From NCBI RefSeq assembly GCF_006345805.1, contig NW_021824748.1:1-17838 (forward strand): 17,838 nucleotides of DNA, written 5' to 3'. Each line of letters starts with the position of its first letter. Position 1 is the stretch's first letter. This stretch comes from Octopus sinensis. Taxonomy: Eukaryota. A model generated the notes under the pieces. That model was given only the letters and a program-made list of their open reading frames with translations, did not search any database and was not told where the DNA came from. The position numbers were made by a program, and so were the translations under genes. Below, one piece after another: positions 632 through 17,838 of this stretch.

Positions 632-1260
632 TTAGCTAATGCCAATGCATATTTCATCATTTCTCTTAATGCCTGCTTTGGCATTCCAGTCTCCTGTCAG
701 AAATAAGACTGTTGTCTTGTTTAATACGTTGCATAATTCTGAGAGGCTTGCGTAAAACTTGTCCAACTCATTAGAAGCAACCAACAGTCTCCCCGTATGG
801 GGTGCGTACACGTTGATGATGGATAAAGTATTACTTCCTTTCGATTTCAATTTAAATTGAATAATCGCGATGCGGTCATTAACACTCCAGACTTTGAGTT
901 CCCTCTTTTCCAGCGAGGCTCGAACAGTGAATCCCAATCCGTAGTGTCGGCACTCAGAGGGGAGAAATATAAGGCGGTATTTTCCATAAGCTTCATCTGC
1001 CCTTCCGCGACCTTTGTCTCTTGAAGACAGCACACATCGACCCCGTAACGGTCTAGGTCGTCGCATAAGCTATTCCGTTTTGACTTCGCTGACAGTCCTC
1101 TAACATTAAAAGAAGCAATAGTAAAAGGCCTCGATCGAATAGAACATGTTTGAGACATATCAAAGAGAGGTACGTCACCACCTCAACCAATCTTAATGGT
1201 CGCATGGCCATATGGATAGTAATCCATAAACTGAAAGTTCAAATCACAGCAAAAGGCGTA
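632..1260 (-). mobile_element. RTE-like LINE 5' portion: APE endonuclease N-terminus (one frameshift near 990) with putative 5' UTR; 3'-truncated
   Basis: TIASFNVRGL, VDVCCLQETK, HYGLGF, NDRIAIIQF, IINVYAP and LTGDWNAKAG are APE-endonuclease motifs typical of RTE-clade elements. No RT domain follows. The UTR extent is approximate. Confidence 0.8.
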
Positions 1261-2767: not shown

Positions 2768-3298
2768 AGATCTCCACTTGTGTGCAACCAATCGACCTGA
2801 TTTTTCCAGGACAACTGCCTCCCTTGAAGGTCTACTATTTTAACTTGTTCAAACTCCTCTAAACATTTTTACTATCTCATACTAAGGAACCATGTACGAT
2901 CTAACTTAAGATGTCAGACTTACAATGTAAATAAGAAAATAAATTAATTAATTAAAAATATTGTTATATATCAATTTTGATCTTTTATGAACGTTTTTGC
3001 ATGCAAAACTGGAGTCAGACGTTCCTAGACCTTAGTTTCTTTATAGGCTACTACAATGTATGCTAAGCCTATCCATAAGGGCCCTTCTACAAGAGGCCTG
3101 GAATTACGCAGTTTATTGATAAAATCTCTAGAATACATTAACAAATTCCCTAAACATATTATAAATTAGTTGATTAACAAATTTGAAAAGCTGAACTGTC
3201 TGAACTTTACATATTTCTAACTAAAAATGAGTCTTTATTTCCCGACAAAACACCCCCCCAAGATCTCCACTTGTGTGCAACCAATCGACCTGATTTTT
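2768..3298. repeat. 38-bp exact direct repeat pair (2768-2805 and 3261-3298)
   Basis: AGATCTCCACTTGTGTGCAACCAATCGACCTGATTTTT occurs at both positions. Confidence 0.9.
2953..3170 (+). repeat. ~218-bp dispersed repeat, left arm of an inverted pair with 6905-7122
   Basis: Direct alignment with the reverse complement of 6905-7122 shows roughly 90% identity by eye. Weaker homology may extend to ~2905. Confidence 0.9.
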
Positions 3299-3607
3299 TC
3301 AGACATAAGTTTAAATATGATAGTAAATTGTATTAGCCTGTTCAACCTTTTTTTGGACCTTCGTCCATGCCAAATCAAAGCCTTTTTGATAAACACGTGT
3401 CTCAATAAAGGAAATTTGTTCGAATATGTATTTAAAATTGACTGTTTAAGTTAAAAATATATTTAATGGTCCTTGAACAATTAGTATGTTGACATTCTTA
3501 TGTGCCTCCGATATGCGAGATCTCTCCAACGGCCTAATTGTTCTTAAATTTTACAGAATAACTAAAAGCCCGTTTTTACATAATTTTTCAAAAATCAAAT
3601 TTAAAAC

Positions 3608-4509
3608 AAATTGCCCAGAGAACAACTGTCCAAACAATATCACTACGATTTTGGACTCCGAGCTCTGAAATCAGTGCTTGTGATGGCCGGTGATTTGAAA
3701 AAAACTTCCCCTGATCTTTCGGAGGTCTCGTCTTTATCTAATGAGAACAGGAAGTGGTCCTGATGAGAACACTGAGAGATATGAACCAACCCAAATTCAT
3801 CTACGAAGACATCCCTCTGTTCCTTGGACTGATTTCCGACCTTTTCCCCGGGCTCGACTGTCCTCGAATTCGGTACCCAGGCTTCAATGGCGCGGTGGAA
3901 ACATCTTTGAGGGAAAATAATTACGTTTTGCTCGAATCACAAGTTGCCCCTTTTACTGATTCCGAAGGTTAACAAAGTGGTACAAATGCACGAGACAATG
4001 ATGACGAGGCACACCACCATGATCGTGGGGCCAACGGGGGGAGGCAAATCGGTGGTTATCAAAACGTTGGCCGATGCTCAAACGAGGTTATTTCGTCGAT
4101 CTACTCCAAGACTCGGGATACACACCAAACTATTCATTTTGAACCCAAAGGACAGGCCCGTCGTCAAATTATACGGAATATTAGATCCCACAACCCATGA
4201 TTGGACCGACGGGCTCCTTTCCAACATATTCCGCGAAATAAACCGGGCTCTGCCTCAGGACAAGAACGAAAGACGATATGTCGTGTTTGACGGCGACGTG
4301 GATGCGTGTGGGTGGAGAACATGAATTCCGTGATGGACGACAATAAACTGCTGACACTCGCCAACAGTGAGAGAATTCGACTCCAGTCCCACTGCGCACT
4401 GTTGTTTGAGGTTTGTTGCAGAAATCATTTTAGGTCGGTGATTTGAAGTATGCTTCTCCTGCTACTGTTTCCCGAGCTGGGATGGTTTATGTCGACCCCA
4501 AAAATGTCT
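3608..4509 (+). pseudogene. DNAH10: Internal fragment of axonemal inner-arm dynein heavy chain (end of AAA1 to AAA2 region), DNAH10-like, retaining 4 micro-introns
   Basis: Introns at 3725-3750, 3943-3967, 4087-4110 and 4411-4433. Spliced: [25 protein letters not shown]...MRTLRDMNQPKFIYEDIPLFLGLISDLFPGLDCPR...TRHTTMIVGPTGGGKS...DGDVDA(L)[19 protein letters not shown]...[26 protein letters not shown], closely matching the DNAH10 sequence as I recall it. There is a 1-nt deletion near 4307. Both ends break mid-exon. Confidence 0.9.
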
Positions 4510-5716
4510 AGCTTCAGCGAAAACTGACGTATTGATTGTTAACGAGACGAAGCTGAAGGGATCAAATAAAATTGAATTTGAAGGCTACAAATCCCTTAAT
4601 ATCCCCTGGAAAACTGACGCAGTAGCAGGAACCTCTGTCTTCTATAATGGAAGTATGAGAGTCAAAAACGGAAAGATTATTGAAGACAAGTCCTGTGAAC
4701 TTATATCGTTCGAACTACTTACAGCCGTTGGCTGGTTTACTGTCGGAGGGATGTATTCAAAGGCTTTGAGAAGCTACCCGGCAGTTGTTAGGACATTCTT
4801 TGAAGAGAACAATCTGGCTATCCTAGTCGGTTACCTGAACGCAAAGAATATTGTCTATGGGTGTGAAGCAACCAATACGGACGGAGAGGTTTTTGAGAGT
4901 TTGTCTCGAAATCTCGGTTTTTCGATATGGACGTCCGAAGAGCTAAACCACTATCCGGATAGAGGCAAACCGGATCGCCTTTTCTCTCCTCGGCGTCTAT
5001 TACTCCACTCTGTGATCGTCAGACAATCGAGGTGGATGTAGGAAGTGATCACATCCCGCAATCATTGAGGCTAAGGACGAAAATAAATCTGACAGAGGAC
5101 GTGTTTATTGGATATAATCTGTCGAATGTGGATTGGCATCTATTTGAGTACTCTATGCGCTTGGCACTTAATACTACCGTGCTCCGTTCTGTTCGGACCA
5201 TGAAGGATATCGACGACCTATCTAAGGTCATCAATTGTCGAATTTTTGGAAAAATTTACGGAAAAGAGAGTATTGAGAGCATCGGGCCCTTGTTTCCGCC
5301 AAACAGACAAAAAACTGTCGATGCTTATAACGAAGAAGGGCACCCTTCAGAATCACAGGAGGAGATGTTCCAACGTGGGGGTCAGAAATCAGTTAAAAGT
5401 TGAAATCAACCATCTCAAGACGATGATAGTAGAAATTGGCAAAAAGAAAATAGAAAAATCATGGAGAAAGGAACGCCGAATGCTGGATAAAAGAAATCCG
5501 AAGTTTTGGAAGGCGTATCAGCGCCTGAACAACGCGGAAGGGAAAGTCGACAATATTGTGTTAAAGGGGCAAGATGGAAAGTATATCCCCTCCGATCTTG
5601 TCCCGGATGAACTAAGAAGGCAGCTGGGTAGAACCCAAGAAGTCGAACCTGCATCAATTATTCCACAAAAGACCTTTGAGAAAGTCACTAAAGCCTTTCA
5701 ATTCTTATATTTATAA
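4510..5716 (+). mobile_element. 5'-truncated Jockey/I/CR1-like LINE ORF2 fragment: APE endonuclease plus linker, frameshifted
   Basis: DVLIVNETKL, GGMYS, VGYLNAKN..YGC..TN..G, PDR and GSDHIP are endonuclease motifs. A basic linker follows (FWKAYQRL). The clade is uncertain. Confidence 0.75.
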
Positions 5717-5949
5717 AAAGCCTTCCGATTTTAACAAAAGCTATAACTATTTGTAAAAAAATATTTCATAAAATATAATTAAATATTTTTCCTCCAAATT
5801 ATTTTTTTTCAAAATGTTGCAGCAGGCGTACAGGAAGCATTTGTAAAGGAAACTTGTTTGAACGTATTCGGCATCAACTTTCTTCAGAGTTTACTTGCCT
5901 TAATATAGTAGAAATTTTAGCTTAACAAAAGATATCAAAAATAATTAAT

Positions 5950-6110
5950 AAAAGTAATTATCATGAAGTCTACAAGTTGATTGATTGTCAAAGGCGTTTG
6001 TTGTAAAAAACAATTATCGAAGACAATGGTTTAAAGAAATTGAGTACCTACCAGAACCAATAGTTACGAGATGGGGGAGCTAGTTTAAAGCTGTTTCTTA
6101 CTATGCTCTG
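5950..6110 (+). mobile_element. Decayed hAT-like transposase fragment
   Basis: Stitched frames give NYHEVYKLID.VK..FVKNNYRRQWFKEIEYLPEPIVTRWGS*FKAVSYYA, matching the hAT 'PEPVxTRWGTW..A..YY' motif. Confidence 0.55.
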
Positions 6111-6289
6111 GCCAAAAGAAGTTTTTTATTTCTGGCTAATCTTATACCCATGTATTGCAGGAGCACTAATTTCACCAATAAACATCAATGGAGTATTGGA
6201 GGCAACTAACAAACTGAAAACCAGGGACAAGATTATACCCAACTTGAACTAATAAACTACCCGTCAATGAAGCTTGCTGAAACCATTGC

Positions 6290-6720
6290 ATACATCTTGT
6301 TAATTCCACTACATTAACCCGGAAAATCAGAAAGGGCACTTACTCAACTTAAGACTCTCCTACTAACGACTCTCCTGAAAGTATTGTCATTCGAGACGAT
6401 AAAAACCAAGGTGGAAATTTTCTATCGCCAGGGCAAAGTGGGTTTAGACCTGGCATATCCACTGGTGATGTCATCTGGACACACAGATGGACCTTTGCCT
6501 TATGTCAAAAATGCAAACGATGCATCGAGATACTTGGAATGTGCAGAGCACAGAGAGGAATTGACATGGAATACTTTTGAGTATTTTTAACAAATTGAAG
6601 TAAGTTATTTGTGATTCCATATAACATATGTGGCAGACCTTCCACTTCTGAACCCATTTTTCTTACCAACTGTGATATGTCGCCGTCAAGGTTGCGACGC
6701 AGATCGGTTACGTTCAAAAT
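6290..6720 (+). mobile_element. Decayed LINE reverse-transcriptase N-terminal fragment (possibly the continuation of 4510-5716)
   Basis: LIPLH*PGK...LLKV..., NFLSPGQSGFRPGISTGD and HGILL are recognisable RT motifs across frameshifts. Confidence 0.6.
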
Positions 6721-6904
6721 TTTTAATACAAATTACCTTTCTAAAGTTATTTTTTTCTGTTCATTACTTTGTTTGATTTTAATAATTTTTTCTGCAAAAA
6801 TTTTAAAGTTTCTGATTTGGTTGAAGAAAAACAGAACCAACTCAAAAATATTAGCAGTTAAAATTTTGTTACTTGGTTAAAATGTATCCTTTGATTTTTG
6901 CTTG

Positions 6905-7122
6905 ACTGATTTATAATATTTTAGGGAATTTGTTAATGTATTCTAGAGATTTTATCAATAAACTGCATAATTCCAGTCCTCTTCTAGAAGGGTCCTTATG
7001 GATAGGCCATTAGCATACATTGTAGTAGCCTATAAAGAAACTAAGGTCTAGGAACGTCTGATTCTAGTTTTGCATGCAAAAACGTTATAAAACATCAAAA
7101 TTGATATATAACAATATTTTTA
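6905..7122 (-). repeat. ~218-bp dispersed repeat, right arm of an inverted pair with 2953-3170
   Basis: Reverse complement aligns to 2953-3170. Confidence 0.9.
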
Positions 7123-7153: not shown

Positions 7154-7800
7154 ATCTATGATCACTTGTGTGAAGAACTAGTCAAGATAATCCATGGTGA
7201 ATACACACCGGATGAGTGGTTCTATACTGGAATCACATACCCAAGGATCCAAAGATTTGAGACCAATTACTTGTATGTCTAACTTATATAAACTTGCAAC
7301 GAAATGTGTTAACAGGAAGTCGGGAGATTATATTGAGGCATATAATCTGATTGTCAATAATCAATTAGGAACTCGGCGAATGTGTCAAGGGGCAAAGGAA
7401 CAAGCAATTCTTAACCGGTGCATTCACAAGCAAAACGGAAATAATTTGTTTTCTACCTGGATTGATGTAAAAAAGCGTTCGATTTGGTAGATCACGACTT
7501 TCTGTTCCAGGTGCTTGAAAACTCCGGACTCCCTAGCTGGATTGTGAATTTTGTGAAGAACCTTGTAACGAAGTGGAGAATAAAGCTAATTCTGAATCAT
7601 AATGAAATCGGAGAGGTAAAATTGGAAAGAGGCATACTCCAGGGTGATTCCTTGTCACCTTATATCTTTACCCTGGTGATGGATCCTCTTAGTAGAATTC
7701 TGAATGCTAAGTACCCAAAAGTGATGATTGATAAACAAGATCAGGATTGTATTACATATACAACAAATCACTTACTGTTTATGGATGATCTAAAAATATT
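7154..7800 (+). mobile_element. R4/Dong/NeSL-like non-LTR reverse transcriptase fragment
   Basis: PDEWFYTGITY, DLRPITCMSNLYK, QLG..RMCQGAKEQ, WIDVKK(AFD)SVDH, RGILQGDSLSP and NHLLFMDDLK are present. Truncated right after the FMDD motif, with two frameshifts. Confidence 0.85.
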
Positions 7801-7829
7801 GAAATGTGTACATCTACATCTATGCAGGG

Positions 7830-9409
7830 AAAAATATTGGGAATGAACTTAAGTATGTTTTGCAAATGGGCGTAAAATTTATCAATTATATCTACTCTGT
7901 TTCGTCGACATAACTGTCCATTTTTGTTCTTTACAATTCTAAGGTACCCATCTTCCCCCAAACACGACCCCAACTATTTTTATATTTAATTTCTATGCCG
8001 GTTTTTTATGAGCCAGTATTCTTTTCCATTATCTACCCCATATCCAACGAGACACGCTGCATGTACGCTGTTACATCCAGGATCATCAAAAATTCCTATA
8101 ATGTTATACAATTATACCTCCTGAATACGAATACAAATATTTCGATATACAAATTGTAATTCCGAAAGGACCAATTTTCAGTAAAGTTCTTAATGCCAAA
8201 AAATGGTAAATATTGACATAATCTGTGACTACTATTGGATTGTTTTTATATCTGCATTCTTTTTTCTATTACAAAGTACAGTTTTATAAACCATTCCAAG
8301 ATAAGGGTACTGTTCAGTTGTGCTGATTCCCCCATTTTGAATGATATATTCATAAGCGTAATACTGGGATCCGCTTTTACATCGACAATATTCACAGCAA
8401 TCAAGCACGTTTTGTTTACTAAAACTAACCAACTTGTCATGCTTAATCGCATATTGATCTTCAAGACTGGCAATCTGAAGAGTAATTATTTATTTACCAA
8501 CCGCGCTGAATATATAACATGATTCAAAATTATGCTGATTTTTGACATTTATAACTACATTTTTATCTCCAGTCAAAAAATAATGAAAATCCTTTTCATT
8601 TTCTGAGAAAAAAGATGTTCCGTAGTCACTTGTGTCAAAATAATTTAATTTGTGTAGCTTTGGAAGTTCATCCTCAGTCTGGGAATATTTCTAACACAAA
8701 ACAACCATATCTGCGAACGAGTTTATTTCTAGTTTTTTTTTTTAATTAACAATAATTGATTAAAAGACAACGAAAAACGTTAAGTCCCAGCGGCAAGGAC
8801 GCAGTGTGCGTTGCCCCGAACAATGGCCAGGCCGATGCGCTGGCGGAACCAGAGGCCCTCTCTCGTGTCCTTGAGCCTCCTCCCGATGGACTACCCGACC
8901 TCTTTGAGGAACGAGTCAGTCTCCTTTCCCGCAGCTCCAGCGGTCTCCAGGGCGATTGCCGTAACGCGGTAGCGGTCCGCGAGCGAAGAATATTTTTGTA
9001 GTTTCATCTTTTCGGCGTGGTTTGCAGCCGAACAAGGGTTTGCGGCGGAAGAATGGATCCTCGATTTTGAAAAGGTATCCACAACGGTAACATCCCATAC
9101 GATGGCCTTCCCCGACGAGTACGGGAATATCTAGTTGGAAGGAAATGGCATTTCTTTTAAATTCCAAATTGTGTCTATCAATCAAAGCCAAATTATTTTG
9201 AAACTCTGTCTGATTGTATTTTTGTCGCTAAAAATTGTATATTTTAAATGCCAACTAATTTTTTAGTGAACTCTTCCCATCGCTGATTACTTTTTGTGCC
9301 ATATAAACTAATTAATTTTTTTCTTTTTCTTCCCAGAAATCTATTTCGGATTTGTAGTGATCAAAATAAGAATTGTCGCGATCAAAATCAGAAAAGATAA
9401 AAACAACAT
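7830..9409 (-). pseudogene. Cathepsin L-like (papain family C1A) cysteine protease with signal peptide and I29 prodomain, interrupted by a CRE insertion and frameshifts
   Basis: ATG at 9409 gives a hydrophobic leader (MLFLSFLILIATILILI). Then FQNNLALIDRHN (ERFNIN-like), SFQL|EINSFADMTEDE (GNFD-like), FDWR, VKNQHNFESCYIFSAIASLEDQYAIK, SFSKQNVLDC, NGGISTTEQYPY, VHAACLVGYG, YWLIKNRWG and GEDGYLRI. There are at least six 22-28-nt introns, one GC-AG (7973-7998). The 3' end is approximate. Confidence 0.85.
8733..9129 (-). mobile_element. 5'-truncated CRE-clade retrotransposon 3' end with poly(A) and 7-bp TSD
   Basis: IFPYSSGKAIVWDVTVVDTF...AEKMKLQKYSSL...ALETAG...RQRIGLAIVRGN. A11 tail (T run 8733-8743). 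TCTAGTT is duplicated at 8728-8734 and 9130-9136. Confidence 0.88.
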
Positions 9410-10004: not shown

Positions 10005-11547
10005 CTACACTTTCTTTCTGATTTCATAAAAATCATGAAGAGAATCTGGAATCAAATCAAAGATGTTTGTCTCTAAGTTTTCCATCAAACTTAAAATTTG
10101 TGATATTGATGGTTCGCAGCTTATATTCTCATAGATATTTGGATCATTATCTTCTATTTCATCAAAACATTCATCAATAACATTATTAAATATTTCTTCA
10201 GATGATTCATTTATGCAACTCGAGTCTGATGGAAATTGTCGAAAAACCTTTTGCCAGCAGTTATAAATAATATCCGCAGATACATTATTCCAAGCATCTG
10301 AGATTATTGTTACCACTTATCGCAAATTTAATTTGGATAAAGACTCTATAAACAAATCCTGGTCATCTTGAAAACATAAAAAATCAATTAGACAATTCCA
10401 ATAATGGAAACATAAATATTTGCAAGAAAGAAATTAAAGATAGCTATGTTAATTAAAGGCCTCACGAGACACCCGACCAGCCTCGCGAATGGCGAAGCCG
10501 TTCCCTCGGATCACAGCAATCGACAGACGTTCCAGGAGCCAAGAAAACTCTCTTGGATCGTGACTAGTCCTTGAAATCCGTCGACCGAGCGAGCGAAGGA
10601 AGCGGAGTGTCTTGGGACCGAAGATCCCGGAGGACCGAAGATTCCAATAATTATCCTTGATTCCAGCATCCAATGGTTGAAGTATTGGTGTCGTATTTTT
10701 TGGTAAAATAAAAAATCAACGTTGCTAAATGTCGATATTTTGTGGCAAGCAGCGTTATCTAATAACATTAAGATTTTTCTTTTTTGAATAATCATTTTTT
10801 CATTAATTTTTTTGAGCCATGATATAAAAATATCTCTTGTCATCCACGCATTTTTGGACGAAGAGTATGAAATTCCATAAATTTCGGGAGAAAATTTTTT
10901 GAAACATCTAGGATTTCTATATTTTCCGATTATTAATGGTTCATATTTTTCTCCAGTGTAACTACAGCATAGATGAAGAGTAACTTTATCTTTACTCCTT
11001 TTAAAGCCCCGTGCCGAATCACCAGTTTTCACGAATGATTTACGTGGGGTAAGTTTGATAAAAAGAGAAGTTTCGTCACAATTAAAAATGTTCTCCTTTC
11101 AATATTGTTCAACTTTGATATTTAATTCTGATAAAAAATTCAAAATTATCGCATGATCAGCAGATGCGGATTCGCCTGACAATGTTCGGAATTTTAATTC
11201 ATGCCTCTGCTTGAATTTTTCTAACAATCTATTTGAAGCTTTAAACTTGTTTAAGCCCATTCTCGAAGAAACAGTTAGGGAAATTTTTTTTAAAGAGTTC
11301 CAGAAACTGGAACATTCTGATCCCTTAGACGCTGAAAAATATCAAGGACTTTTTCATCAAGTCCGTTTTTATTTTCACTTAATGATGAGGAAAGAAATCC
11401 TTTTTTGATAAATGGAAGAATATTCTTTTTTATACGAAAAATAGTTCCCTTGCTAGTATTGTACATTATGGATAATCTCCTCTCAGAATGTTCTTTCTTT
11501 AAAAGATGATCAGCAATCTTCAACTTGGTTTCATAATTCAAAGGCAT
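10005..11547 (-). pseudogene. Tigger/pogo transposase (HTH-psq, CENP-B HTH, DDE_1), frameshifted and interrupted
   Basis: MPLNYETKLKI...NVPVSG, FKASNRLLEKFKQRH, IFNCDETSLF, GFKRSKDKVTLHLCCSYTGEK..PLIIGK..NPRCFK, KNAWMTRDIF..WL, LMLLDNAACH, QPLDAGI and ISDAWNNVSADIIYNCWQK. Confidence 0.92.
10406..10640 (-). mobile_element. Short CRE-clade 3' fragment inserted in the pogo transposase; 11-bp TSD, no poly(A)
   Basis: SGIFGPKTLRFLRSLGRRISRTSHDPREFSWLLERLSIAVIRGN. ATTCCAATAAT is duplicated at 10395-10405 and 10641-10651. Removing the insert restores QPLDAGIKDNYWNCLIDFL. Confidence 0.85.
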
Positions 11548-12587: not shown

Positions 12588-15143
12588 TTAAAAATCAACA
12601 ACAGGAGTAGCACTAGCAGTCTGCAAAGAATACTTCATTTTAGCCGGATAGTTGGTATTATTAATCAATGAATAAGATATCCCTACCATAACACACAATT
12701 TCTACCATCCAACACTTCATAGAAATTCCCCCTCCACATCACAAAAGAATCACTTTCGTCAATCTCCATCTCTACAGTCCCAGCCTGCACTGTCAAAATC
12801 TAGAATTTTATACCTCACAACTAACTAAAAATATCCCCTCCAAAGTCACCAACGGCTTTCTAGAATGAGGAAACAGCACCAACAATCCAAATAAATTGGG
12901 CCTGTCATCACAGTGGGAATACACCGCGTGTGTCTCAAAGGACTCCAACAGTTGTACTCTCCTCACAATCGACACTAAACAAACTAATAAACACTAAAAT
13001 AACACTGATCTCTAACTTCCCTCAAATTAGAAGTAAATTGAGGAATAATGACATTATTGGGTTTTGACTTGATTGGGTCGTTATGAACTAAATTGACTTT
13101 ATACCAACTCACGATATGAACGGAGGTGTTTTGTTATCCCCACAATCTGCAACCCATAGCCAAAGTCCGAATATTTAATCCTCTCTCCATTAAAAGGGTC
13201 TAGCCCGACCACTCGTACTCGATTTGACTGGCGAGATGACAACGGGTTCAATTCAGGCACAACTTTAAATTAGTTACACACAAACTTATTCTAGCTCGGA
13301 TTCCATCCGCTGCCAATCGCTATGTACGTTTAGTTAACAAGCCCATACCTCGTTGATTCCCTCAAATCTGGCGATTATGTCAGCGATAGGTTCTTCATCG
13401 GCTATGGGCATCATCGAATCATTTATTCTGCCACTTGAGAGACGTGTCCTTTTATTACGTCGTTTTTTCTTGTTCTTAGCCTTCCTGATATATATACTAA
13501 TATTAAATAAAACCACTTTCGGGGTGATCCATCAGGGATATCAGCCATCATCAGATCCGTCCCAATTTGTTTATCAACCATTACCGGAGAATTAATTTCC
13601 ATAACCACTTTCTCTGCTAAAATTTCATCAGTATACAGACTAGGATCACTAAAAATGTGTATCAGGACACAACATACCCAACTTTGACGGAATTTGTTAC
13701 TCGAATTGGACTATTGAGTTCCGAATTTACAGTCGAAGAGGGGGAAAATGACACATTAGGATTATTTTCAATAAAAATGTTGCCGGAATTCAATGATTCT
13801 CGATTTTTGTTCAAGGAGGGGCCAACGAGGATCACATCCTCAGGTTCGCTATCAGAACTAGCAATAAAAGTGACTCGTCTTTTTTTTTTCTTCGATAGAT
13901 ATTCCTCAAAATCAAAATGAACACCTTCCTTCTCAACAATCTTACCCACCTCGCCAAAATGAGTCTTGTTCTTGCTCTTGTCTCGACTGGAAAGGTTTTC
14001 ACGTGCAGTCGTGTTTCGACCTTTCTTTAAAATGGACACTGTCGATTTGGAATGAGGGACACCAGTGGTCACTTGTCCAAAATTAGGATTCTTTTGATGG
14101 ATGACAGGCTCATCTTGTATTATATGACTTTTGGCTTTAGAGTTTTCCTTATTGTATAATCTTTTCGAGTTTTTTGACGACTTTTTTGGCGAAATTGAAT
14201 CAGATATATTCAAATTAGAACCTTCGTGGCCCATAACAGTCTCTTGTCCCAAGAAATGCGTTTTATCAGAATTTTTATCATAGGAAACTTCACGAGTGCG
14301 ATTATTATGGCTATTTTTGGCCATTCTTGAAACTCTCTTGGTTGAATTTCTGCTATTTTCAACACCAGAAGGTAATTCGTAGATGATTTCGACATCTTCT
14401 ATCTCGTGTCCCGAGGATTGGGGGTTCTCATCAGCCAAATCAGAGAAATAATCACTTCTATCCACATCTGTCCCAGCTTGAAATCCCAAAGATATCATTT
14501 CAGGTCTATTCTGACTCTTTTGTGTAGAGTCTCTTTGAACTGAGGCGATTGAGATATCCTGGGGATCATCCCTCCATAAAGGGTTTTGCCTTTCTTGCTC
14601 AATACTCATCTTGTAGGTCGAATTCGGCCACTTTGAGTGAGAAACCTTACGAGTAATCAATCCTTGTACAGGTCCTCCAATTGAGGATTTTAATAACTTT
14701 GTTAAATTGGCATATTCAGAGCTTCTTAGCATGTCATCCATGATAGGGGACTCCGCAGGGAACAATTCGGCGGTTTTTTCAGATTTTTTGCTATTTCTGT
14801 CCACATTTGATGACCTTGGTTGGAATTTTACTACTGATGGATGATTTGTCTTATCTTTCGGTGCTGAAAATAAACGTAGATAGTTATTCTGTGGGATTAA
14901 GATGGAATTTTTAACCAAAATGCTCCTGTCTTGTATTGGTGGAGGATTTCCATGGCTCTGTTCTTCGTAACGAGTGCTTTCTAATCCGCTAATGTCGTGA
15001 TCTTGGTCATTTGGGTGGATTTGGATTTCTGGTTGTTTAGAGCAGGGCAATTACCGTCAGGGAGAAGAAGCTTGTGCGTTTTTTTATTTCCAAGTTCCTT
15101 TAATATTCTTTTTTTACTAAAAGTTGTTATTATTTGACATCAT
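12588..15143 (-). CDS. CENPC: CENP-C/Mif2-like inner kinetochore protein (~762 aa, 11 exons, no frameshift required)
   Basis: GT-AG introns at 15138-15117, 15054-15029, 13677-13649, 13516-13485, 13348-13320, 13285-13263, 13112-13088, 13003-12975, 12813-12785 and 12705-12683 give a 2289-nt open frame. The protein has a long S/K/R-rich disordered region, RQSNRVRVVGLDPFNGERIKY (CENP-C-motif-like), and a cupin-like C-terminus (LFGLLVLFPHSRKP...GTVEMEI...FVMWRGNFYEVLDGISYSLINNTNYPAKMKY). The first 5-nt exon and the 12813 donor are the least certain parts. Confidence 0.7.
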
Positions 15144-15326
15144 TTTTGAAGATTAAAATATAATTAATGTCACCGGCCGTAGGATGGACGGCGCCGTTGA
15201 GTGGACACTAAGCAATATTTTTAATTAAAAATATTTTTACAATAATAATCTCCATTAAAAAATCAAAATTATTTAAATAATTTATTAAATATTCCTAATT
15301 TTTGTTTAATTAAGAATCGCGTGAGA

Positions 15327-16036
15327 ATGGTTTTGTTGTATCTATTGCAATCCTTTGTTGAAAAATTAATTAATTATATTGAAACTGGCTTGATAGAAGA
15401 TGAAACACAGAGGAAAGAACGTTTTAAAATACGTTCTCTCTCAAAAAATTTTATTTATGAGCAATCTGTGCTTTTCATTCTGAAAAATGGTAAAAAACTA
15501 AGATTCTTCACAATCGAACAAAATGAATTTAAGATGAAAACAATTGAGGTAAATATAAAATCACATTTTGTAGGCTGAACACAATTTAAACCATTTTGGT
15601 CGTGATAGGCTTTATTCCAAACTCTGTGAAGAAATTTATCCGATTACGAGAAAAGAGGTCCTTACTGTTGTTAGCCGGTGTGAAGTTTGCCAGGTTTAAT
15701 ATTTATGAGCAATATAGGCAGACATTACAGAAGAAAATACAGTTGCAATATTAGAACAGAGAAATAATGTAGTAGAAAATTTAGAAAAAGCAGGAGCGAA
15801 AATGTCTAAAAAAGGAAATGGAAATTCGACGAAAAGGATATAAATGTCGGAGATTCTGTTATTATCCGACATGATAGAGACGCAAATGTGAATAATAGGA
15901 AATATCATCTTCACAATGAAATATCTTCAGAGAAATTTTATATCGTCGACAAAAAAATAATTTATGTGTGTTAAAAGATGAAAATGGAACAGAAATTGAA
16001 TCCATTCACATTAGTAGACTCAAACGATTAGTTTAA
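15327..16036 (+). CDS. Integrase-derived protein (~220 aa): H2C2 zinc-binding domain plus C-terminal domain, DDE/rve catalytic core absent; 2 micro-introns, 2 probable homopolymer frameshifts
   Basis: Introns at 15549-15573 and 15694-15717. Exon 2 = AEHNLNHFGRDRLYSKLCEEIYPITRKEVLTVVSRCEVCQ (HxxxH...CxxC). Exon 3 = ...RNNVVENLEKAGAKM...DINVGDSVII...ENGTEIESIHISRLKRLV*, if one A is added in each of the runs 15808-15813 and 15951-15957. Confidence 0.7.
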
Positions 16037-16099
16037 ATTTTTGGTTAATAAAATTTTAAAAATTGTATAAAAAGTTTTTCAACTTAAAATAAGAAGCAA

Positions 16100-17093
16100 A
16101 CACACCGCGGCCGAAGGCCGCATAGGGGAATAGTTGGATTCCAAAAAAATCCGGCCGTAGGCCAATTGGTTTAGGTTGGACCTTAAAAACTACACACCGC
16201 GGCCGAAGGCCGCATAGGGGAATAGTTGGATTCCAAAAAAATCCGGCCGTAGGCCAATTGGTTTAGGTTGGACCTTAAAAACTACACACCGCGGCCGAAG
16301 GCCGCATAGGGGAATAGTTGGATTCCAAAAAAATCCGGCCGTAGGCCAATTGGTTTAGGTTGGACCTTAAAAACTACACACCGCGGCCGAAGGCCGCATA
16401 GGGGAATAGTTGGATTCCAAAAAAATCCGGCCGTAGGCCAATTGGTTTAGGTTGGACCTTAAAAACTACACACCGCGGCCGAAGGCCGCATAGGGGAATA
16501 GTTGGATTCCAAAAAAATCCGGCCGTAGGCCAATTGGTTAGGTTGGACCTTAAAAACTACACACCGCGGCCGAAGGCCGCATAGGGGAATAGTTGGATTC
16601 CAAAAAAATCCGGCCGTAGGCCAATGGTTTAGGTTGGACCTTAAAAACTACACACCGCGGCCGAAGGCCGCATAGGGGAATAGTTGGATTCCAAAAAAAT
16701 CCGGCCGTAGGCCAATTGGTTTAGGTTGGACCTTAAAAACTACACACCGCGGCCGAAGCCGCATAGGGGAATAGTTGGATTCAAAAAAATCCGGCCGTAG
16801 GCCAATTGGTTTAGGTTGGACCTTAAAAACTACACACCGCGGCCGAAGGCCGCATAGGGGAATAGTTGGATTCCAAAAAAATCCGCCGTAGGCCAATGGT
16901 TTAGGTTGGACCTTAAAAACTACACACCGCGGCGAAGGCCGCATAGGGGAATAGTTGGATTCCAAAAAAATCCGGCCGTAGGCCAATGGTTTAGGTTGGA
17001 CCTTAAAAACTACACACCGCGGCCGAAGGCCGCATAGGGGAATAGTTGGATTCCAAAAAAATCCGGCCGTAGGCCAATTGGTTTAGGTTGGAC
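16100..17093. repeat. Tandem array of ~10.9 copies of a 92-bp GC-rich multi-hairpin unit
   Basis: Units start at 16100, 16192, 16284, 16376, 16468, 16559, 16650, 16742, 16832, 16922 and 17012. They differ only by single-base deletions. Confidence 0.98.
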
Positions 17094-17838
17094 TTACTAC
17101 CTGAAAGCCTAAGGCTGGATAAGAAGTAATACGTATGCAGCAATTAAGGTTTGGTTAGGGTTCCCTTTAGAAATCTGTACTGGTCATCTCTAAAATTGCT
17201 GTTAGGATACCAACGTCTATTTTATTTAATAAATTTTACAAATAAATTCGATTTATAACTATTAAAAAGTATTATTTTAAATGGTAAACCTCGAAATATA
17301 ATAAACATTATGATTTTTAATCAATAATCGTAGAAAAAACGGTGTGGTTGGTTTTGTTAGCTCTCTTATTTTCTCAAAAGTCACCAAATTCATCGAAAAT
17401 AGGCTTAAAATGGGACTTGGAAAAAATAAGGTATGTTTTATATGAGCAAAATTGAAATAAATGAGATTTTGAAAGTGTCCAACGAACGGCGCCGTCCAGC
17501 CTACGGCCGGTGACAATTAATATTAATTTTATACAATCGTCGATCCATTGTTGCTCTGAATAAACACACAAGTTGTTGTTGCGCAATAAATTAATATGCG
17601 CCATTATATATTTGGTTTATATTTAAAAACAATTAAATTCTCGATTCTGAATGCTTCAAAAATTAATTTGTGTGATTTACGATAACGTATTTTTTAGGAA
17701 AATACTATCAAACGGAAAAAACGACTTGATTTTAAACTAAACAGTTCTAAGCTGATTTGTTAATTCTATTGTTCAACAAAAGCTTTAAGTTTTCCTGAAG
17801 CGACAAAAAATTTGTTTTGAAAGTAAAGGTTGTTTTCC

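Follow-up and report, generated by a model that had tools for sequence, protein, structure and literature searches.

A 92-bp tandem array in Octopus sinensis that shares a motif with the inverted ends of its probable transposon carrier

A block of nearly identical 92-bp repeats lies between the inverted ends of what appears to be a mobile element in Octopus sinensis (contig NW_021824748.1), and the locus raises the question of where these repeats came from: from the ends of the element itself, from an unrelated repeat taken up by it, or from the way in which the sequence was assembled. The original prediction favored a very recent amplification of a binding site related to the ends. Analysis of the window, by which we mean the whole 17,838-nt stretch of DNA, confirmed the observation behind this prediction with small corrections and lent partial support to its interpretation.

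The array and its carrier element

Tandem Repeats Finder reported one strong array in the whole window, a 92-bp repeat at 16100-17093 (period 92, 10.9 copies, 98% matches, 1% indels, score 1932), and these coordinates are identical to those originally proposed. The array was cut at every ACACACCGCGG, which yielded 11 units. Units 1-4 and 7 are identical and have a length of 92 nt each; units 5 and 6 are shorter by one base (91 nt) and units 8-10 by two (90 nt). The last, unit 11, is incomplete and breaks off after GGTTGGAC. The visible array is single and approximately 1 kb long, and at this size it is a minisatellite. A CRISPR-like array was rejected given the lack of spacers and the eukaryotic context. 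The features of the array and of the element around it are given below, with the basis for each in brackets.

15163-15167, no strand: left copy of the target-site duplication, ATTAA, 5 bp (read directly; identical bases at 17516-17520)
15168-17515, + strand: whole element, 2,348 bp, read as a non-autonomous integrase-type (Ginger2/TDD-like) DNA transposon (inverted ends, TGTCA...TGACA, 5-bp duplication, H2C2 remnant, no DDE core or reverse transcriptase domain)
15168-15209, + strand: left terminal inverted repeat (TIR), 42 nt, begins TGTCA (38 of 42 positions match the right end)
15321-16036, + strand: decayed integrase-like gene remnant in five pieces and three frames, without the catalytic core (reading pieces, of which only the zinc-finger piece is significant)
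15574-15696, + strand: remnant of an integrase H2C2 zinc-binding domain (Pfam PF17921 Integrase_H2C2)
16100-17093, + strand: 92-bp tandem array, 11 units (Tandem Repeats Finder and unit splitting)
16100-16191, + strand: first unit, intact at 92 nt and composed of two diverged ~46-nt modules (half-versus-half alignment, four-way alignment, pattern scan)
17094-17473, no strand: AT-rich non-repetitive stretch from the array to the right end (unit similarity borderline, then absent; no family match)
17474-17515, - strand: right TIR, 42 nt (inverted-repeat pairing, alignments, pattern scan)
17516-17520, no strand: right copy of the target-site duplication, ATTAA (read directly)

The TIRs that had been proposed for the element were recovered as arms at 15160-15209 and 17474-17523 (50 nt including flanks), which pair with 86% complementarity. 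The termini read TGTCA from 15168 and TGACA up to 17515, and ATTAA abuts both of them. A piggyBac-like TTAA duplication was rejected because it requires an unpaired or mismatched terminal base, which these termini do not fit, and ATTAA is preferred. Within 15168-17515 we found no long terminal direct repeats, reverse transcriptase, or RNase H; likewise, neither Helitron termini nor a Rep-helicase remnant was found, with no such domain in any piece of the element. The enclosing inverted ends together with the integrase remnant place the array inside a mobile element, as had been claimed. The array makes up 42% of this element, starting 64 bp past the last reading piece of the remnant and stopping 380 bp short of the right end, and it is flanked by plain AT-rich DNA. 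A second AT-rich inverted pair at 15260-15291 and 17223-17254 (32 nt, 84%), situated ~90-260 bp inside the ends, may be what is left of inverted ends that were once longer, or a chance pairing in AT-rich DNA.

The integrase-like remnant is heavily damaged, with the whole catalytic core missing (one large internal deletion), three changes of frame, and three in-frame stops between two pieces of the same frame. The piece at 15574-15696 matched PF17921 (Integrase_H2C2) with E = 4.6e-6 and 27.1 bits, compared with a curated cut-off of 25.5, and in the PDB its similarity to the N-terminal domain of PFV integrase was weak (E = 0.18); further PDB matches, to collagen IV, were discarded as spurious CxxC matches. 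The later pieces matched DUF5641 weakly (E = 0.18) and yielded no match to PDB structures. We take them to resemble the region downstream of the catalytic core in gypsy-type integrases, and we infer that they represent C-terminal integrase. Pfam revealed no rve/DDE core, reverse transcriptase, or other domain in the other element pieces of at least 30 aa.

Two interruptions of the remnant, each of 24-25 nt, have GT and AG at their borders, and these could be very small introns and not damage, at a size that would be unusually small for an animal. One of them holds an exact 14-nt copy of another sequence of the remnant and is also similar to a stretch close to the right end; its sequence suggests filler DNA left at a repair junction rather than an intron. 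The tiny GT-AG stretches also prompted us to consider a ciliate genetic code, which was dropped, as a dynein piece elsewhere in the window best matches animal DNAH10 and a scan for ORFs ending in TGA only was uninformative.

On the evidence of these features, the carrier is read as a Ginger2/TDD-like non-autonomous DNA transposon, and not as a proven member of that group. Ginger2/TDD elements have TGTNR termini, inverted ends of ~50-180 bp, and duplications of 4-5 bp (5 bp in TDD-4/5) (PMC2836005, PMC6839031), and the Ginger2 target duplication is also given as 6 bp (PMC6839031). They use AT-rich targets and have an integrase-type transposase with H2C2 and DDE domains and no reverse transcriptase (PMC2836005, PMC6839031). 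The element described here likewise has TGTNR...CA termini, TIRs of tens of bp, a 5-bp AT-rich duplication, an H2C2 domain, and no reverse transcriptase, and it shows each testable Ginger2/TDD feature except TIR length, where its 42 nt fall just under the published 50-180 bp. It also differs in that the published RTATAY target preference is not evident and in that the DDE core, which defines the clade, is missing from this copy. With the DDE core missing, support for the Ginger2 assignment comes from the ends, the duplication, and the 41-aa zinc-finger piece. Tandem repeats receive no mention in the two Ginger papers (PMC2836005, PMC6839031).

The element is known from one copy. The satellite core had no match in viral contigs, metagenomes, or prokaryote genomes, and the pattern of the inverted ends had none in metagenomes or prokaryote genomes. 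A 16-mer from an inverted end was found in three viral contigs, and these were judged chance matches in GC-rich phage DNA that lack further similarity. At the protein level, neither the N-terminal piece nor the H2C2 piece joined to the following piece in the same frame had a homologue among 5.8 billion proteins. The 41-aa H2C2 piece by itself gave 0 matches among 1.84 billion representative proteins, and it is too short for a library of that size. Exact look-ups of three ORFs of the window found nothing.

The window also holds other fragments. A pogo/Tigger-type transposase fragment at 10514-11032 (- strand; Pfam DDE_1, E = 8e-21) and a weak endonuclease/reverse-transcriptase hint at 635-1066 (- strand) make the window a patchwork of decayed mobile elements. 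A reverse transcriptase fragment at 7484-7843 (+ strand; Pfam RVT_1, E = 1e-11) lies 7 kb from the element and has no sequence relation to the protein pieces of the element. At 2953-7122, inverted arms of about 200 bp (2953-3154 and 6905-7122, 89-97% complementary) surround ~3.75 kb that include, at 3944-4321 (+ strand), an isolated exon-like piece with similarity to axonemal dynein heavy chain 10 at the AAA1/AAA2 boundary (Pfam AAA_6), the best PDB match of which is mammalian DNAH10 (E = 3e-43). Judging by this match, the host is probably an animal, one with a genome rich in AT. The ORFs next to the dynein piece had no match, and this region may be a transposon-captured gene fragment or two small inverted elements that flank a pseudogene piece. 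The longest ORF of the window, at 13662-15050 (- strand), would encode 462 aa rich in Ser, Asn, and Lys, and a distance of 118 bp separates its start from the left end of the element. This ORF had no Pfam match and no homologue among 5.8 billion proteins; it could represent an orphan gene or a low-complexity exon that evolves fast, or it may not be a gene.

A motif common to the repeat unit and the inverted ends

The 92-mer is a diverged dimer of ~46-nt modules, a substructure that is new here. The two halves of the unit (45 and 47 nt) aligned with a score of 15, compared with a shuffle mean of -12.9 ± 6.7, and it is because none of 2000 shuffles scored as well that we regard the unit as a dimer. 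In the first unit each module consists of CGGCCG-W-AGG, followed after 14-20 nt by K-TGGA. A search with the 12-mer that the unit shares with the right end, allowing two mismatches, revealed a second related site in each unit, GCGGCCGAAGGC, at a distance of 44 or 48 nt from the first. The array as a whole therefore amounts to ~22 end-like modules, all of them oriented as the left end.

The 11-mer CCGGCCGTAGG occurs 12 times in the window compared with 0.00 expected. Ten of these sites are in the units, one is in the left end at 15173 on the + strand, and one is in the right end at 17500 on the - strand, which bears out the claim that both TIRs contain it and that the units carry it in the orientation of the left TIR. 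The relationship proved to be larger than was claimed, as every intact unit carries a two-part motif in each of its halves, and the two ends carry it as well. In the right end this motif comprises the exact 12-mer CCGGCCGTAGGC, which is the match of the unit to that end (4 of 2000 shuffles were as good), plus GTTGGAC; in the left end it reads CGGCCGTAGG...GTGGA. The unit thus shares with the terminal part of an inverted end both an exact 12-mer and a second block, at conserved spacing. When the two halves and the two ends were placed in a four-way alignment, the blocks CGGCCG-A/T-AGG and TGGA were invariant and their spacing was equal. Local alignments of each half with each end beat shuffles in three of four cases, at 4-6 per 1000; the fourth, the left end with half A, was not significant (189 of 1000 shuffles as good).

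A scan of the window with the pattern CGGCCGWAGG-N14-20-KTGGA gave 18 matches compared with 0 expected, for a short motif (10 + 5 nt) that was defined only once the sequence had been inspected, and with shuffles throughout that preserve base composition only. Sixteen of the matches are in the array and one is in each end, on the + strand for the array and the left end and on the - strand for the right end, and none falls outside the array and the ends. This confinement suggests that the link between the array and the inverted ends is more than chance, and even with a motif defined post hoc a chance similarity appears unlikely.

Taken with the anatomy of the unit, the shared motif leads us to favor, as the probable reading, a transposon-borne minisatellite that derives from the end of the same transposon and was recently expanded or homogenized. 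Alternatively, an unrelated satellite or host repeat could have been captured by the element or have expanded within it, the match to the ends then being a coincidence of two GC-rich, palindrome-rich sequences. The exact match of just 11-12 nt and the one alignment that failed to reach significance are compatible with such an event, and a small non-autonomous element, Xenopus miDNA4, has been proposed to have taken up a tandem repeat that already existed (PMC12628747). Moreover, no single-copy progenitor is visible in the copy examined, as the left flank of the array is without similarity to the unit and that of the right flank is borderline (12 of 500 shuffles as good); further downstream, from 17200 on, similarity is absent (216 of 500 and 155 of 500 shuffles as good). 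A coincidence would nevertheless have to place a spaced two-part motif in the array and the two ends and nowhere else, to place it in both diverged halves of the unit, and to produce a 12-mer match that shuffles rarely equal, and we consider capture unlikely.

Uniformity of the array and its possible roles

Comparison of the ten full units with the first unit revealed 0 substitutions, 0 insertions, and 8 one-base deletions spread over five units, in agreement with the earlier description of the units as free of substitutions. The statement that each unit has all five of the motifs listed for it holds for the intact units but not for units 5, 6, 8, 9, and 10, in which one or two motifs are broken by a deletion. 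Because the units are without substitutions, the expansion would have been recent or the units are being kept alike by conversion; their identity across ~1 kb fits the recent amplification that was originally proposed and fits ongoing homogenization too. Set against ends that differ at 4 of 42 positions and a decayed gene, the substitution-free array suggests that expansion or homogenization is much younger than the decay of the element. The imperfection of the TIRs can also be original, with the inverted ends imperfect from the start, and the uniformity of the array could in part reflect assembly polishing.

A further possibility is that the array is an artefact of assembly or consensus building, with a true number of units that is lower or higher and with both its length and its one-base differences stemming from a long-read assembly. 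All eight differences between units are one-base deletions within runs of at least two identical bases, and they cluster in the second half of the array; deletions without any other change and clustered in this way are typical of an unpolished long-read consensus of a repeat. However, 73% of the positions in the unit lie in such runs (p about 0.08 for all deletions falling there), and the location of the deletions is for this reason weak evidence by itself. An artefact could account for the copy number and the deletions, but not for a 92-nt periodicity with unique flanks inside a coherent element, and as an explanation of the array we regard it as distinctly unlikely.

In the favored reading, the carrier belongs to the cut-and-paste transposons with an integrase of the retrovirus type as their enzyme, and it is a non-autonomous copy shortened by an internal deletion. 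The starting point of the array would have been a ~46-nt module resembling the terminal 42 nt and located in a non-coding stretch 3' of the integrase gene. Duplication and divergence of this module would have produced the 92-nt dimer, which would then have been amplified head to tail to ~11 copies via unequal exchange or replication slippage. We infer this order of events and this mode of expansion, as we do any binding of integrase to the modules. One aspect of the layout speaks against derivation from the ends: the modules are oriented as the left end yet lie near the right end, unlike the subterminal binding sites of foldback-type elements, which are arranged symmetrically.

Should the array have a function, a cluster of secondary integrase-binding sites would be likeliest, by analogy with the Galileo and Tetris elements. 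It is at least as likely that the array is a neutral by-product, of the type that can seed satellite DNA. Each module, being oriented as the left end, is turned toward the right end and could stand in for the left one. Conceivably the ~22 modules are integrase-binding sites that would either attract the enzyme of the family to a defective copy or offer it a ladder of alternative left ends, which would be the first such site array in an integrase-type (Ginger-like) DNA transposon and might seed a satellite across the genome of this animal. We give this fuller proposal a slim chance.

The unit had also been described as a series of consecutive mini-hairpins. All five of the motifs in question are present in the sequence, and four of the five form hairpins in the minimum-energy DNA fold of the intact unit. 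Mini-hairpins with a GNA loop, of the C-GNA-G type, are known for their unusual stability (PMC13037366). Folded as single-stranded DNA, the + strand of the unit reached -16.0 kcal/mol with z = -2.07 and the - strand -16.5 kcal/mol with z = -2.62, in both cases a somewhat more stable fold than that of shuffles. Four motifs were also folded singly, each against 200 shuffles, with the following results.

GCGGCC-GAA-GGCCGC: -6.8 kcal/mol; 2 of 200 shuffles fold as well; z = -3.1
CCGGCCGTAGGCC: -2.9 kcal/mol; 18 of 200 shuffles fold as well
GGATT-N7-AATCC: -1.3 kcal/mol; 61 of 200 shuffles fold as well
AGGT-TGG-ACCT: -1.1 kcal/mol; 20 of 200 shuffles fold as well

The description is therefore accurate for GCGGCC-GAA-GGCCGC, which is strongly stable, and overstated for the other three folded motifs, which at -1.1 to -2.9 kcal/mol are not clearly more stable than shuffles. 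The unit contains four 6-nt palindromes compared with 1.36 expected, a marginal excess (96 of 2000 shuffles as high), and the inverted ends fold no better than shuffles. The palindromic cores are explained just as well as half-sites for protein recognition, for which structure is not required. An RNA gene or tRNA-derived unit was rejected, as the unit matched neither an Rfam family nor a tRNA. Cruciforms in duplex DNA need longer stems than the 4-6 bp present here, and the substrate of DDE-type integrases is duplex ends and not hairpins. Despite the one stable hairpin and the folding of both strands of the unit, these points make it very improbable that the array acts via DNA secondary structure, with single-stranded triloop hairpins that serve as an origin-like, pause, or recombination signal and also drive their own expansion.

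Known array-carrying elements and the route to satellite DNA

The closest precedents for an array derived from the end of its own transposon are Tetris of Drosophila virilis and Galileo of D. buzzatii, in which repeats lie within a TIR-bounded non-autonomous element and the unit shares a stretch with the terminal part of the TIR (37 bp at ~80% in Tetris) (PMC4079207). The TIR-220 repeats of Tetris have this 37-bp stretch in common with the terminal domain of its own inverted ends, the internal repeats of Galileo carry extra or secondary transposase-binding sites, and both elements have been proposed as seeds of satellites (PMC4079207). In contrast to the present element, their repeats are part of long inverted ends and occur symmetrically at both ends, whereas here a single array lies on one side, ~380 bp inside the right end and oriented as the left end. 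Unit length is 92 nt (2 x 46) here and about 220 nt there, and the enzyme of the present element is of the integrase type and not of the P-element/THAP type. With no module in the left subterminal region, the element does not have a foldback architecture, and given its single one-sided array it would work like the Tetris/Galileo group without being a foldback element.

A second set of relatives in design comprises small non-autonomous elements (MITEs), namely miDNA4 and Xstir of Xenopus and the element of the clam Donax, which also combine a TIR-bounded non-autonomous element with an internal array whose copy number can vary (PMC12628747). Such array-carrying MITEs are regarded as a stage on the way from mobile elements to satellite DNA, and the origin of satellite DNA from tandem repeats within mobile elements has been reviewed (PMC12628747). 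These carriers differ from the present one in being Tc1/mariner-type or unclassified and in having no coding remnant, and the miDNA4 repeat is thought to have been captured (PMC12628747). A literature search found no work in which a tandem repeat of 92 bp occurs together with inverted ends and a transposon; a 13-mer was not found in the literature, and any link between Ginger2 and satellite DNA was incidental there.

Because the route from mobile element to satellite DNA is already known, the locus is a clean example of it and not a new kind, and the finding by itself alters no current view. Few starting points of satellite DNA have been documented, and tandem repeats within mobile elements are among them; this locus shows an early stage at which the module, the dimer, the amplified dimer, and the link to the terminus are all still recognizable. 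The published carriers that we found are foldback/P-type, Tc1/mariner-type, and Helitron elements, to which it would add an integrase-type DNA transposon. If the motif is conserved across the family, it would indicate a recognition sequence, not described in PMC2836005 or PMC6839031, for Ginger-type integrase at the ends of these elements.
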